Both the position numbers and the translations under genes were made by a program. From the NCBI GenBank assembly GCA_024704765.1, contig JAKMXF010000362.1:1-64000 (forward strand): a DNA stretch of 64,000 bases. Reading direction: 5' to 3'. Below the pieces are notes generated by a model. That model searched no databases and was not told the origin of the DNA. It worked only from the letters and a program-made list of their open reading frames with translations. Below are positions 1-54,559 of this stretch, one piece after another. The stretch comes from Oopsacas minuta (lineage: Eukaryota > Animalia > Porifera). Each line of letters starts with the position of its first letter. The stretch's first letter is position 1.

Positions 1-29
1 GCAATATCACTTCTTGATATTTGTTCCAT
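1..29 (-). CDS. 5' end of a small Maf-like bZIP gene (copy A1), truncated by the window edge
   Basis: Reverse complement of 1-29 reads ATG GAA CAA ATA TCA AGA AGT GAT ATT GC (MEQISRSDIA). Positions 1-~268 are a near-identical copy of 2925-~3196 (copy A3 start plus upstream region). Confidence 0.8.
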
Positions 30-689
30 TATTCTATTTACTGTTTGTATTGTTTTGTTTTGATTTGAAATTGATTAAACTCACTCCCTATTCATACTTA
101 CAAATAATCTGTCATTACTCCATCAGATAATTCTCTGATTGGTAACGTTTTGGTTAATCTCATCCAATGTGTTAATTCATTCTGTCAGTGAAATTGAAAA
201 TCTGCATTGTTAGAATTTCAGATTAAGAATCTCGGAGAATTGAAAAATGATTAGAAGAAAGTTTGAGATTTTGATTCGAGGATAGATCTCAAACAAGATT
301 GAGGTTTAATTTGTAATCACATTGGTTATTAAGATAGGCGATTATCGAAATACCAATAATTATCCGAGAAATGTGATGTAGTCTAACTAATTCATTGATA
401 GGACAAAGTATTTTCTATTAAATATCAGTTTAATGAACTAAAGACCTTAAATTCGAATAAGAGGGCATAAATATTAATTATGAGTTAATAGAATAAGAAT
501 ATCCATTAAAATTGGTATGATCAATGGTTAGTTAGTAGCCATTAGCTTATGAGGAAGGCAATATCCTTAATGGCAGTAGTGAATATTTGTACTTATTGCC
601 TTTTGAGATACTAGCGACATTGTTAACAGAAATATAGCTGCCACGCCAAGAAATATTAATCCTATTAAGGAAACCTATTTTTGGCTGTA

Positions 690-775
690 TTAACACGTGT
701 TTCAGTGAGGAGGTTGGTCAGGTTTCAACTTGTAAGTTGAAACCTGATCAACCTCCTCACTGAAACACGGGTTAA
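690..775. mobile_element. 86-bp near-perfect palindrome, possible piggyBac-type MITE remnant
   Basis: Arms 690-731 and 734-775 are reverse complements with 2 mismatches. Both ends are TTAA and the right end reads ...CACGGG-TTAA, resembling piggyBac TTAA|CCC...GGG|TTAA termini. The palindrome is certain; the TE assignment is inferred. Confidence 0.5.
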
Positions 776-1424
776 GCATTGTGAAATTGAATCTGACGGC
801 AATGTACAATAACTTGGTAGTCAAATGCACCCTAAACAGACACACGAAAGGAGGATTACACTTCTACAACTTACAAGTCCAGGGAACTATATTGATTTAC
901 CATACATCTACGTAATGCCCAATCAATCTAAGAGTATCGGATTTCTCCCTATAACGGACAAAGACTACCTCTAATGTATTCGATATTCGGAGACTCCACT
1001 ATACCTACATATACGTGTATATATGTATATATATATATATACGTATTACGTACAAGGGCGTAACTGTGGCCGAGCAGTGCTCCCATTTCCCATTCAAAAC
1101 TTTTGATCGCTTGCTACGCTCATTCGTAATATTCAATTAGAGAGAACATTATTTGAGGAGGGTATTGTGTGTCAAGTCATACCAGGGGTGTGCAATCTAC
1201 GACGTGTACACCTCAATCCTCTCATGATCAAGCTAGCAATTATCCATGTTCAAATTTTCAATTTATCTCTTAATCACTTCTTTGGAATCAAACCAGAAAG
1301 TATAACATAGCAGATTAATTCTATGTCAGAGTGATGTATTAGATTAGATTAGACTCATAGCTTTAGTAGCTATTGCAATACCAAATTATACAATCAATTC
1401 AACCTATCATACAGTATCACTTAG

Positions 1425-1432
1425 TATAAATA
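1425..1432 (+). promoter_or_regulatory. TATA box of bZIP copy A2
   Basis: TATAAATA 60 nt before the ATG at 1485, in an AGTATAAATAGG(G)AG context shared with copy A3 (minus strand, 3015-3022). Confidence 0.6.
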
Positions 1433-1484
1433 GGAGACGTTATCCAATAAAAAATCAAATCAATACAAATAGTAAATTACAGAA

Positions 1485-1796
1485 ATGGAACAAATATCAA
1501 AAAGTGATATAGCAGAATTAGACATCAAGAAGCTAAACCTTCTAATAAAGTCAAGTAACATGACTGAAGAAGAAGCTAGAGCTTTGAAGTATTCCCGTAG
1601 ACTTAAGAAGATGAGTCATTACAACAAAGCTCAGCGGGATAAGAAGAAGAGACAAGAACACTCTCTAGAAGCAGAAAGAGAACACCTGCAACAAGAATAC
1701 GATTATATTCTGCAGGAAGTTCAAATGCTGAAAGAGGCAAAGTTAAAATTTGAAGTGATGCAGATTTTAGATAATTTAGAAGAACAATATTATTAA
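1485..1796 (+). CDS. Small Maf/CNC-type bZIP microprotein, 103 aa (copy A2)
   Basis: DIAELDIKKLNLLIKSSNMTEEEARALKYSRRLKKMSHYNKAQR...QEHSLEAEREHLQQE aligns in register with the small-Maf extended homology region, basic region and zipper ([42 protein letters not shown]...QKEELERQRVELQQE). Intronless, three further copies nearby. Confidence 0.85.
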   Translation: MEQISKSDIAELDIKKLNLLIKSSNMTEEEARALKYSRRLKKMSHYNKAQRDKKKRQEHSLEAEREHLQQEYDYILQEVQMLKEAKLKFEVMQILDNLEEQYY

Positions 1797-2120
1797 GCAG
1801 TAATGTATGTAAAAATTTTTAAATATATAAATATCACTTTCTGAATATTTAAAATTGAATTAAACTTTTCTTAATGTATATATTGTATTTATGAGTTGAT
1901 AAATTGGAAACAGCAAAACAGGCAAAGTATATACGTACATGCAAAACCAACAAAACACAATAATTATGAGAGTTCTCTTTCATTAAGTATAAACATATCA
2001 AATATTCTACCTGTAAATAGAGAACAGTAAACTTCAGTTTTAGCAACAAATCTCTGATAACGACACTATTTTTACCCCAGAAATCCGCAGCAGTAGTTTC
2101 TACACACCATACTTCGGGTA

Positions 2121-2405
2121 TCACAACATGTTAGATAACGACACTTCGAATATATCAACACTGTATTTTAATGCCTGATGGATCAAAATCAAGTCGGATA
2201 TTACGACTTGGGAGCATTTGTACTGTAATGCAGGTATGGTTTCCGTATCTGCAGGAAGGCTTAGCAAAATTCTTATTATTCGTGAATAATTGGGTTCTGG
2301 ATTATCTAAGTACCGTATTACCTCGAATAATAACCCACCTCGATCAAGTTCGCTAACATTAAGTCTCATTATTATGAACAGATTCTTGGTCCCGTGGGGT
2401 GTCAC
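2121..2405 (-). pseudogene. Possible degraded hAT transposase C-terminal dimerisation-domain fragment
   Basis: PNYSRIIRILLSLPA...SDLILIH...VDIFEV loosely resembles the hAT dimerisation consensus (PN...L.IL..LP.T...ER.FS...L.LI.IH...DI.EV), but the central ERSFS motif is missing. Confidence 0.3.
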
Positions 2406-2641
2406 AAAAAGCGACCCTGACTATATTTGCAATTGTAGCTTAATATGATATACAATACATGTATTTCGAATAGATTCTTGAAATGACAGGCTGCACTTGC
2501 CCCGTATTTAAACATTAAAATAAAAGGCGTGTAGCTACGAGTCAAAGATCATAATGAGATTGATTATTAATGGAGACTGCAATTTGTTTACAAAAATATA
2601 TCATTAAAATAAGTGAATTTACAAGTTTCAATAATTGCTGC

Positions 2642-2953
2642 TTAATAATATTGATCTTCTAAATCATCTAAAATCTGCATCACTTCAAATTTTAACTTTG
2701 CTTCTTTCAGCATTTGAACTTCCTGCAGAATATAAGTGTATTCTTGCTGGAGATGTTCTCTTTCTGCTTCTAGAGAGTGTTCCTGTCTCTTCTTCTTATC
2801 ACGCTGAGCTTTGTTGTAATGACTCATCTTCTGAAGTCTACGAGAATACTTCAGAGGTTTAGCTTCTTCTTCAGTCATGTTACTTGACTTGATTAGAAGG
2901 TTTAGTTTCTTTATGTCTATTTCAGCAATATCACTTCTTGATATTTGTTCCAT
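2642..2953 (-). CDS. Small Maf/CNC-type bZIP microprotein, 103 aa (copy A3)
   Basis: About 90% identical to copy A2. The true start is the ATG at 2953 (MEQISRS); the ORF-track extension to 3010 starts at a non-ATG codon and overlaps the TATA region. Confidence 0.85.
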   Translation of the reverse strand: MEQISRSDIAEIDIKKLNLLIKSSNMTEEEAKPLKYSRRLQKMSHYNKAQRDKKKRQEHSLEAEREHLQQEYTYILQEVQMLKEAKLKFEVMQILDDLEDQYY

Positions 2954-3014
2954 TATTCTATTTACTGTGTTTGTATTGTTTTGTTTTGATTTGAAATTGA
3001 TTAAACTCACTCCC

Positions 3015-3022
3015 TATTTATA
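3015..3022 (-). promoter_or_regulatory. TATA box of bZIP copy A3
   Basis: Minus strand reads AGTATAAATAGGGAG, about 62 nt upstream of the ATG at 2953; same context as copy A2. Confidence 0.6.
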
Positions 3023-4462
3023 CTTGCAAATAATCTGTCATTACTCCATCAGATAATTCTCTGATTGGTAACATTTTGGTTAATCTCATCCAATGTGTTA
3101 ATTCATTCTGTCAGTGAAATTGAAAATCTGATTTGTTAGACTTTCAGATTAAGAATCTCGGAGAATTGAAAAATGATTCGAGAAGAAAGTTTGAGAATTA
3201 GAAACTGGGATAGAACATTCAATTGTGGTTTCGGTTGATTCAATGCCAAATCGATTCGATATACTAAATGTTAATTAATTAATTTTCAGTAGATGTATTA
3301 CTTAATTATTCCTCTTACATTTACAGTTACTCTAATCTAAGTTGAACAGTGGCATAAACCATGGCTAAGTCATGGATTATAAGAAGCAGCATCAACTACA
3401 CTGTGCCGGTCGCGGTTGTGTCATATTGTCTAAATGCCAAGTTTATGCCAGGTTCACTCAGTGAGCAAACGGTGCATGTGCCACCAGTTAAGATATTCGT
3501 GCCCAGTGGCCAGGCCTGCTAGATCATCGGAACAGCACTACCATAACATAATCTAACACTCATTGATTTTGCCTCGGTTTGAAAATCCTGCCCCTGCCCC
3601 TGCCTACCAAGGTATGTCAGAACCTGGGCCACCACGTTCCACTGGGTTCACTCAAATTCGCATTCACACTAAGTGCATGTTTATGAAATACAGACAGTTC
3701 GCTATATGTACAATTCGCAATCTCTGCTACACGGACAGTTCACTACAGGAAAAACTTTATTCATATGAATGTACACCAGCAAGAGCTAGGATGAGGATGT
3801 AGCGTCTGAAAGCATGTTAGTAGAAATGACAAAAATGCCTTCAATACATTGATGAGGTTTGGAATTACACACATTTTCAAATTTCACGCTTTGCTATGTA
3901 TGCTTGTACGATTAATTCACTGCTGATAGGAAGCTGATAATAATTAGCGAGGAAGATGGTTTACAAGATCCTAGGGCGATCTTGAAACCACTAAGAAAGA
4001 AGTAATCAGAATATTCAAAATTTCAAGGAAAGATGAAAGAATTGTAGAAGATTGCTTGGTAATGATACTAGACACATTATATATTCACAAATGTGTGTTA
4101 AATAATACAAAAATTAAATATTAGTAAGGCGGTTATAGAGTAGATGTTTACGTTGAGAATTAGTTGGAAAGTTGACTTGTATCTAATGAGTGATAAATTG
4201 TTTCGGACAGAAAAATAATAATTAGCCATTAATTACAAGATACTTATCCTCGTTTCAAATTTCAAATTCGCTTCAAAATCGTGTTAGACTCTCAAAACTC
4301 TAAAAGTAAGGTTGAACAAAGCAAATTAGCATATTTTGATGACACTAACGTTACAAACATCTCACAGCGAAATTATAAACCGGTGCTATAGGGGGAAAGT
4401 ATATATTGGTTAGAACGAAAGTTCGATGACAAAACAAATCAATACAAACAGCAATTACAGTA

Positions 4463-4774
4463 ATGGACCTGGAGACAAGTGATATAGCAGAAATTGACAT
4501 AAAGAAACTCAACCTCCTAATCAAGTCAAGTAGCATGACTGAAGAAGAAGCTAAAGCTCTGAAGTATTCTCGTAGACTTCGGAAGATGAGTCATTACAAC
4601 AAAGCTCAGCGTGATAAGAAGAAAAGACAGGAACACTCTCTAGAAGCAGAAAGAGAACATCTCCAGCAAGAATACACTTATATTCTGTAGGAAGTTCAAA
4701 TGCTGAAAGAAGCAAAGTTAAATTTTGAAGTGATGCAGATTTTAGATGATTTAGAAGATCAATATTATTCTTAG
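4463..4774 (+). pseudogene. Small Maf-like bZIP copy A4 with premature stop
   Basis: TAG at 4688-4690 where A2 and A3 have CAG (Gln). The frame continues with intact homology (EVQMLKEAKLNFEVMQILDDLEDQYYS) to a TAG at 4772-4774. Confidence 0.8.
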
Positions 4775-52126: not shown

Positions 52127-54181
52127 GCTGTATTTAGGTAAGTCAGAGTAAATAAAATCACAAGCATTATATCATAAAATTAGAAAACTACATATGTAAC
52201 AATCGGATTCACCATACTGTCCTTCCAGTGAAACCCTTGAGAGTTAATCATATTATTATACACAAAAATACAGCGAATAAATATAAAGTAAATGTTTTCG
52301 CAAGTTAGTGAGCTATGCTAGTTTCATTATTATAATATTCAGAGGGATTAGTTAATTAGATGATAATTATATAAGATTATAGAATCACTAGAACTCAATT
52401 TGTATGATCAATTATTTCTTTTCGTTAATTAATCGTATTTTTCAGTAATCAGTCATCTTTCTATTTAAATTTAGAGAACTGTGAATGATCAATGTGAAGG
52501 AATAAGACCCAAAATATTTCTGAGCTGCTATCCAAATAGTGTACTGAAATGCTCATATTCTCTGCTAGGGCCAATATAGTCAGATAATCCAAGGATATGT
52601 CCATTCAATAATTTCCTTAGTGAGTTATAAAAACTCTCAGCAACACGTAGGGATGTCAAGGAAAGTTCTGGCCAACTTAGGGTCTTATTCCGTATCCCCA
52701 TTTTGTATGAATTCTTTTGATTACATTACTATGCTTGTAATTCTATACTCTAATAGCAAGTGTATGTGAAAGTCCAACAAGATGTACTGAATCAAAACTG
52801 CAGTTTCATTGTGAGCAGAAGCATTACACTAAACAATAATCTATAGTGTGAATTAGGAGAGCAAATCACCCAGCCAATTACATTGTACTAAAATAGTTGC
52901 TAAGGCAAAATTAGTAAAATAGTTAATTGTAAAATCGAACAAACGTTTTCCCTGCTGTATCCTTGTTATTTGATCCCCTTCCGCCAATGGATAAAAGGTT
53001 GACTACACTAATGGTTAGGACCATATAGGGGCGCCGTCAGGGCGGCGCGAGGGGCCGCATTCGCTCCAACTTGAGCAAGTGCTGCGCCAGGAATCCGCCA
53101 CCTGGTCAATAGTGGTGTATTGGTATTTGAAAAGTGGGGAAATGGTGTATCCCTCTGAATGTTCAATAAACAATTCAAATTATACTATCGTCTATCGAAT
53201 TCCAATCAGAGACAGGCTTCAATCCCCTGGTTGTTAGGCATATCAGTATTAATTTTGTTCCAATTACAGTACTGTGGAAATTTAAAAGCAAGAGGCCTTA
53301 GTCAAAAAGAAAACAAAATATATTTTTGTTTATGGAAGAACAAAAGGTGGGGAAAACACGTTCCCCCCAATACATGACTGCTAGCGACCCGAACTGAACG
53401 AAAATTTTGTGTTTAGGACTCTGGAGCGCCTCTGGCATGTGGTAAACAAAATTTTGAATACAATTCAAGGCTGGTTGATTCAATCATGAATTCGGTTAAT
53501 AAGTACTCGGCTTAAGACTTGCTTGTGTACGTTTAACTTAACATAAATGTAGAGATTATCTTATGCAATGAAAGATTCTGAAAGATCAAAGGGCCATGCT
53601 ACCAAATGTGATCCTATGGCGCGAATGCTCCGCCTACCAATAGACCTGGCGGCACCCCCCGGGACCCTGTATTCTCTACACAATTTTGGACGGTTTCCAT
53701 TAGTATTATCTGACTCAATTTGAGTGTAAACATTGTAAACTGCGAATTGATATTTCTAACTAACATATCTTACTAGGAACTCAATAAGGGATTTCTGTAA
53801 TCAAACAATCTGACTTTGTATATATAATTATAATTAGGAAGATTACAATCAGCTAACATTATTTATACAGTGTGAATTTACAAATATACAAATTATATCA
53901 TTTTCATAAAGAATTAAGTATTTAATATATATTCTATTCAGAAGGTGGAGTACGAAGATTTGGAAGTATATTTCAACAGTTACGACAGCGGGATTTAACT
54001 ATGAAATATAGAACTAAACGGTTAGATAATATATATATTATTCAGAAATATATTTGTAATACTCAGATACCTATTTCGATATTTTTAGATTTTTCTTTAA
54101 TTCGCCGATGATATAAAATGGTCGTTTACAATATAAGAGGCATTTTGATTCCTTGGGATGCAATAAGTTCAAGTTCAAGAT

Positions 54182-54559
54182 ATGAACAGTATTGCAGAGC
54201 AGGAATCATATTTCAAAGAAATCCAAAGTATTTTGATGCCAAATTGGAGAGAACAAATTAGATCTGGGAAAACACTCCTAGAGATTGTGGATATTTGTAG
54301 GTTGGATGAAGTGAATATCAGAGAATTGAACTTTATGCTAAAGAACTTAACAAATCTTGACGTAGCTCAGTTGAAATCTCTAAGAATGAAGATAAAAGAT
54401 CGACAATACAGAACTAGAGTTAGTTACAACAATGGAGATAAGCTATTACAAGAAATTCAAGATTTAGAAGCTGAGAAGGAGGCACTATTGACAAAAAGAA
54501 AAGAGATGATGAAAGAAATAAACTTTTATTTACAAGTTATTCAACTTGATACCATATAA
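54182..54559 (+). CDS. Degenerate Maf-like bZIP microprotein family B, 125 aa (palindrome spacer)
   Basis: LDEVNIRELNFMLKNLTNLDVAQLKSLRMKIKDRQY aligns with Maf [36 protein letters not shown]; followed by a zipper. Confidence 0.8.
   Translation: MNSIAEQESYFKEIQSILMPNWREQIRSGKTLLEIVDICRLDEVNIRELNFMLKNLTNLDVAQLKSLRMKIKDRQYRTRVSYNNGDKLLQEIQDLEAEKEALLTKRKEMMKEINFYLQVIQLDTI

Follow-up and report, generated by a model that had tools for sequence, protein, structure and literature searches.

Several very small genes of the basic leucine zipper (bZIP) type lie side by side at the start of one contig of the glass sponge Oopsacas minuta (GenBank JAKMXF010000362.1, hereafter C362). They raise the question of where such short, repeated regulators come from and what they could do with a basic region that departs from the rule of their class, since the way in which bZIP factors read DNA is the textbook example of a fixed code, in which one Asn and one Arg are invariant. 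The array comprises four copies of a gene that we call mini-Maf, numbered c1 to c4 from left to right in the window, that is, in the 64,000 nucleotides of C362:1-64000, whose start is the first base of the contig; genome-wide searches covered 61,460,524 bases in 365 contigs. We consider it probable that the array consists of stand-alone genes, clustered locally, that encode Maf-type bZIP proteins of ~12 kDa in a single exon, each gene with its own TATA-like box, within a large glass-sponge expansion of mini-Mafs, and that the products act as DNA-binding partner or competitor subunits with an altered half-site preference. The literature offers few points of contact. Neither bZIP nor Maf is mentioned in the Oopsacas genome paper (PMC10280926) or its supplements, the Aphrocallistes genome paper mentions a single bZIP, up-regulated in the growing osculum and of unknown function, and our literature search found no paper dealing with hexactinellids and small Maf together.

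Maf ancestry and the altered basic region

Copies c2, c3 and c4 all lie above the gathering threshold of the bZIP_Maf family PF03131 (38.3, 35.9 and 34.8 bits against a cut-off of 22), with matches spanning model positions 2–80 of 92. The ~12-kDa protein is made up only of the helices of the Maf extended homology region, the basic region, a zipper of five heptads and a short tail of acidic and aromatic residues (ILDDLExQY). Compared with PDB chains, a profile built from the subfamily recovers solely MafB, MafG and MafA (E 8e-6 to 1.4e-4), without any CNC chain at E ≤ 1, and it aligns to the Maf chains with no gaps through the basic region and zipper. Within the sponge genome, hhalign relates the same profile to one of the canonical Mafs of the species, on contig C88, with 90% probability (E 1.7e-6), as against 4%, in a gapped alignment, for a CNC-like gene on contig C325. 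In the AlphaFold2 (AF2) model (mean predicted local distance difference test, pLDDT, 91), helices at residues 6–11 and 14–23 are followed by one long helix at 28–102, and the top ten Foldseek hits are all MafA, MafB or MafG chains (TM 0.61–0.78 over 87–99 aligned columns), with weak E-values (2e-3 to 8e-2), as expected for simple helices. On these profile comparisons the subfamily is a descendant of Maf and not of CNC, and the preliminary description of the array as Maf-derived bZIP microprotein genes is borne out by the PF03131 match, the Maf-only PDB matches, the two hhalign results and the MafA/B/G-like fold. As for the term microprotein, the length of 103 aa and the relation to Mafs of 256–332 aa agree with it, whereas the basic region is rewired and strongly conserved, not lost.

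A CNC-type origin of the subfamily, which is recognised by the motif KMSxYNKAQR, is unsupported, given the exclusive PDB matches to Maf and the 4% hhalign probability for the CNC-like gene. CNC/Nrf2-type bZIPs belong to the same Pfam family and also carry an accessory helical segment ahead of the basic region, but they have Ala where mini-Mafs and Maf have Tyr, and the profile match to them is weak and gapped.

The altered part of the protein is the basic region. Paired with Maf, Met43 stands in place of the invariant Asn, Tyr46 corresponds to the Maf Tyr, Asn47 to Ala, Gln50 to Cys and Arg51 to Arg. The Maf signature N-x2-Y-A-x2-C-R is therefore absent and reads M-x2-Y-N-x2-Q-R, with Tyr and Arg retained, and Asn47 sits four residues after Met43 on the same helical face. 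This M-x2-Y-N-x2-Q-R basic region is unchanging in 23 aligned relatives. Specifically, in the segment K-Y-S-R-R-L-K-K-M-S-x-Y-N-K-A-Q-R-x-K-K-K, 15 of the 21 columns are invariant among the 23 aligned subfamily members, as against 18 of 82 columns elsewhere in the protein (Fisher p 4e-5). The zipper keeps the pattern of Maf: its d positions (L61, L68, I75, L82 and F89) are in register with the basic region and align with the MafB zipper without gaps, and together with R, Y, V and K at the a positions they follow the Maf arrangement.

Mini-Mafs are thus similar to MafA, MafB and MafG in having an extended homology region, a basic region and a zipper, in the Maf Tyr and Arg, in the gap-free zipper register and in a predicted fold that superposes on chains of Maf–DNA complexes. 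They differ in the basic region, MxxYNxxQR in mini-Mafs against NxxYAxxCR in Maf, and in the conserved C-terminal ILDDLExQY tail that mini-Mafs carry. Vertebrate Mafs also lack two residues of the mini-Maf extended homology region; the two are common to the canonical Mafs of the sponge itself, where BLASTP aligns gap-free. These canonical Mafs are four genes of 256–332 aa at C88:838965-846304 (L038), with NxxYAxxCR intact and Pro/Ser-rich N-termini; they form one 8-kb cluster in which the first gene runs opposite to the other three. The mini-Maf profile matches these genes best, and they have the same spacing from the LN motif to the basic region, are likewise clustered and end their zipper similarly (YEIMQ versus FEVMQ), but they are distinguished by the long Pro/Ser-rich N-terminal region and the canonical NxxYAxxCR.

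State of the four copies and selection on them

The array had been described as four copies of about 103 aa in the order minus, plus, minus, plus, starting at 29, 1485, 2953 and 4463. Positions, order and strands hold, but intactness does not: there are two intact genes, one interrupted copy (c4) and one stub (c1), the last reduced to nine codons because the window begins at the contig end. The coordinates are collected in Table 1; for c3, the start is the ATG aligned with the other copies, while the mechanical open reading frame runs further upstream to a GTG. From start to start, the head-to-head pairs span 1456 and 1510 bp, in agreement with the earlier values of about 1.46 and 1.51 kb. At the level of the coding sequence, c2 and c3 are 92% identical, c3 and c4 96%, and c2 and c4 91%. 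The preliminary description expected further copies to the left of the window, where the contig itself starts; a genome-wide nucleotide comparison found no near-identical copy on other contigs.

Table 1. Mini-Maf copies and their flanking elements at the start of the window (window positions equal contig positions).
Feature	Position	Strand	Description
c1	1-29	(-)	first 9 codons only (MEQISRSDI), truncated by the start of contig C362; 29/29 bases same as the c3 start
c1 upstream flank	30-286	(-)	common to c3, 94-97% identity to 2954-3214; TATA-like box 67 nt before ATG
c2 core promoter and leader	1423-1484	(+)	TATAAAT 60 nt before ATG; homology to the other copies begins at 1423
c2	1485-1796	(+)	intact 103-aa mini-Maf bZIP gene, stop codon included; PF03131 E 2e-9; AF2 pLDDT 91; omega 0.13 vs c3
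c3	2642-2953	(-)	intact 103-aa mini-Maf bZIP gene, stop codon included; exact protein in NCBI/UniRef (P0001)
c3 upstream flank	2954-3214	(-)	common to c1; TATAAAT 69 nt before ATG; CCAAT-like motif
c4 leader	4430-4462	(+)	common to the other copies; TATA-like TATATAT 63 nt before ATG, outside the homologous stretch
c4	4463-4774	(+)	interrupted: in-frame TAG at 4688-4690 (codon 76), one-codon N-terminal deletion, stop shifted by one codon

The interruption of c4 is a single codon, TAG where c2 and c3 both have CAG. Downstream of it the frame is still open and nearly unaltered, so the lesion is young, and c4 is probably a young pseudogene disabled by a recent nonsense mutation. Using c2 as the outgroup, the private changes of c4 comprise six non-synonymous and three synonymous substitutions, compared with 5 and 13 on the other branches; this contrast is suggestive only (Fisher p 0.10).

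The readable copies differ from one another with coding synonymous divergence (dS) of 0.15–0.38. Between c2 and c3, dS is 0.28 and the non-synonymous divergence (dN) 0.036, giving a dN/dS ratio (omega) of 0.13; between c3 and c4, dS is 0.148 and omega 0.30. Judged from this substitution pattern, c2 and c3 are under purifying selection and probably functional. Relatives in other assemblies are numerous. A word search recovered 14 clusters of relatives in ENA assemblies, at 62–83% identity and almost all of 102–104 aa, and a cluster look-up returned at least 41 closely related proteins there, which keep the rewired basic region unchanged. These often share a contig, with at least seven on a 938-kb contig, six on a 1.19-Mb contig and four on a 711-kb contig.

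Every copy in the window has a TATA-like box 60–69 nt 5' of its ATG, and an upstream stop precedes the start Met of each by only a few codons. Because the upstream stop is so close to the Met, each ATG has a TATA-like box and the relatives are called as proteins of 102–104 aa, the copies are read as stand-alone genes.

The genome-wide family and growth of the array

The window copies belong to a much larger set. A genome search with PF03131 gave at least 77 matches over the cut-off, a lower bound, of which 74 are free of internal stops. Open frames of ~100–170 aa hold most of the matches, and 33 of the 77 have another match within 6 kb. At each of the 27 loci recovered with c2, a Met stands a short way ahead of the domain and a stop soon follows the zipper, and in most of them Met or another hydrophobic residue replaces the Asn while the Tyr is retained. 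These other mini-bZIPs resemble the window copies in being single-exon genes of ~100–150 aa, clustered, with the Asn lost and Tyr and Arg kept; the window subfamily differs from them by its own signature, K-M-S-x-Y-N-K-A-Q-R, which we found in the window copies and in three members on contig C341. The latter lie at C341:125013-126245 (L004, L006) and C341:54112-54393 (L005), and two of them form a head-to-head pair ~0.6 kb apart. In the tree, one member, C341a, groups with P0014 and P0015 of other assemblies with 100/100 support. Members of the window type and of the C341 type occur together on one 938-kb contig of an ENA assembly, which suggests an old linkage.

Further members were noted along the way. 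Apart from c4, the only bZIP_Maf matches with internal stops (TAG and TAA) are C341:135874-136035 (L043), which belongs to another mini-bZIP subfamily of the KMKTY type, and C177:410454-410714. Beyond the window on the same contig, C362:119352-119597 (L044) has a more canonical basic region of the N-x2-A-A-x2-M-R type, and within it, positions 54167-54556 (+) hold a weak, divergent mini-bZIP-like frame (hmmsearch E 0.007 with the subfamily profile).

Small Mafs number about 1–3 per genome, and the preliminary description had measured the array against them, on the premise that animals carry few such genes. This comparison is misleading: the genome has at least 77 bZIP_Maf matches, which is not few, and the small MAFs form a bilaterian subfamily that, like the large-MAF group, arose after the cnidarian–bilaterian split (PMC4736632), so that orthology of the mini-Mafs to small Mafs is not expected. 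Mini-Mafs are probably an independent sponge miniaturisation, not small Mafs by descent. The likeness to MafF, MafG and MafK is one of architecture, namely a DNA-binding and dimerisation module with no activation domain, and by analogy it probably extends to a role as partner or competitor; unlike the mini-Mafs, which are probably not their orthologues, are rewired and occur as dozens of clustered genes, small Mafs retain the Asn, Ala and Cys contacts.

The growth of the array has to be read from a sharp boundary of homology. Similarity among the copies extends from about 35–60 nt upstream of the ATG to about 10 nt past the stop, and in c1 and c3 alone it takes in another 260 nt of flank; the match first reported between 1-268 and 2925-3196 proves slightly longer, bases 1-286 aligning with 2925-3214 at 94%. 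Outside these limits, alignments of the head-to-head spacers (1.1–1.2 kb) and of the downstream regions are no better than those of shuffled sequence, in line with the earlier remark that the spacers differ, and the spacers at 270-1470 and 3200-4440 are single-copy genome-wide apart from tiny low-complexity matches. In a tree built from a 102-column alignment, c2, c3 and c4 form a clade of their own (support 82/79), which fits either duplication after the split from the species in the ENA assemblies or homogenisation. At a coding dS of 0.15–0.38, spacers duplicated along with the genes would still be expected to align; their lack of homology implies either that each duplicated segment hardly exceeded the gene itself or that gene conversion has acted on older copies.

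Simpler histories fit poorly. A single duplication of a 2.95-kb gene pair does not match the data, since the nearest relative of c4 is its inverted neighbour c3 (96%) and not c2 (91%), and the spacers are unrelated. Retrocopies are unsupported as well: c1, c2 and c3 share the TATA region, there is no common 3' untranslated region or poly-A, and homology stops ~10 nt past the stop. Nor is there support for a special meaning of the alternating orientation, which is ordinary here because 12 of the 19 neighbouring bZIP_Maf pairs genome-wide are inverted (six divergent and six convergent) and seven are tandem.

The array may have grown by local, partly inverted duplication, with similarity confined to gene bodies through very short duplication units or through gene conversion. 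In terms of the original proposal of a recent local birth-and-death expansion, the local part stands, on the separate clade of the window copies (82/79), and so does death, on c4, while 'recent' applies only in a relative sense, at dS 0.15–0.38. The strongest competing account, to which we give somewhat less than an even chance, is that the array is old and that gene conversion (concerted evolution), rather than recent birth and death, keeps the gene bodies alike. It would explain why homology stops at the gene edges with no similarity between spacers although coding dS is only 0.15–0.38, why c4 is closest to its inverted neighbour c3 rather than to its positional counterpart c2, and why the copies in ENA assemblies cluster by assembly group, with several near-identical copies per contig. 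However, with only three sequences a conversion tract is not statistically shown, plain duplication accounts equally well for the extra 260 nt of flank common to c1 and c3, and some paralogue types are common to several ENA contigs, so that homogenisation is incomplete.

Two other features of the spacers are recorded here. The divergent spacer between c1 and c2 contains a near-perfect palindrome at window positions 690-775, unique in the genome, with 42-bp arms and a 2-nt loop; the corresponding RNA has a folding energy of -70 kcal/mol (z -14.6), and in Rfam it gives only generic microRNA-hairpin matches under the gathering scores. In the tail-to-tail spacer between c2 and c3, a candidate fifth, relic copy at 2286-2357 (-), in which 24 aa resemble the C-terminal FEVMQILDNLEEQY family tail, was rejected as not significant (tblastn E 0.27).

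Proposed function and meaning of the expansion

Mini-Mafs retain all the parts that a Maf dimer on DNA requires, with nothing added. Because the a and d positions of the zipper follow the Maf pattern, pairing of mini-Mafs with one another, with the canonical Mafs or with a CNC factor is plausible. We propose that mini-Mafs dimerise through this zipper, with each other, with the canonical large Mafs or with a CNC factor, and that the dimers would contact DNA through the rewired, strictly conserved basic region, in which the invariant Asn has become Met and a new Asn appears one helical turn later. With no activation domain, the proteins may serve as subunits that act as partners or competitors and prefer an altered half-site. 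As to the basic region itself, the odds are about even, on its sequence, that the rewiring means a changed half-site preference rather than lost DNA binding, and an outright loss of DNA binding appears rather unlikely.

Several points weigh against the reading of the array as functional partner or competitor genes in a locally growing cluster. Replacing the invariant Asn could abolish base-specific binding, and DNA binding, dimer partners and regulatory sign are purely inferred. Support for grouping the window copies in one clade is no more than moderate (82/79, from 102 columns), the non-synonymous excess on the c4 branch is not significant (p 0.10), the TAG of c4 could be a polymorphism or a sequencing error, and the exact c2 protein is absent from the public protein collection searched.

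A different role would follow if mini-Mafs were dominant-negative microproteins that take the canonical large Mafs or the CNC factor as dimer partners, block their DNA binding or activation and read no DNA themselves. The absence of an activation domain, the length of only 103 aa and the loss of the invariant Asn are consistent with such a role, and the alignment of the zipper heptads with Maf makes pairing with the four C88 Mafs plausible. However, a basic region that took no part in DNA binding should drift, yet nowhere is the protein better conserved than here (15 of 21 columns unchanged, p 4e-5), and all Arg and Lys residues of the region are retained along with the Maf Tyr. We regard the dominant-negative role as unlikely and prefer subunits that still read DNA.

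That all copies are decaying, non-functional open reading frames is suggested by the nonsense codon of c4, but it is highly improbable in view of the omega of 0.13 for c2 and c3, the 74 of 77 family matches that are stop-free and the full-length relatives at 62–83% identity in other assemblies. Weakest of all, and hardly credible, although the array lies at a contig end, a place where repeats often interrupt assemblies, is an origin of the copies as transposon passengers, which single-copy spacers, the absence of transposon genes and ordinary neighbours (a Methyltransf_16 lysine methyltransferase, Abi, RPA2 and STIL) rule out, or as assembler duplicates or collapsed haplotypes, which for c2–c4 is ruled out by 4–9% divergence, opposite strands and unrelated flanks, with no near-identical copy on another contig.

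Taken together, the locus is a useful, not exceptional, example of the glass-sponge expansion of mini-Mafs. What it adds is that one subfamily clearly stems from Maf and not from CNC, that one copy is dying and that homology is limited to gene bodies. More speculatively, glass sponges may possess a parallel network of ~80 mini-Maf subunits that have lost the Asn, with basic regions fixed per subfamily and each reading a new half-site, in clusters where gene conversion maintains uniformity amid the birth and death of copies. The expansion would show how a compact genome multiplies one class of regulator. A lineage-specific family that has dropped the Asn, with the replacement fixed under selection, would, if true, amount to a natural experiment on changing the bZIP code and to a large-scale natural re-coding of how bZIP factors recognise DNA, in an early-branching animal whose genome is very compact.

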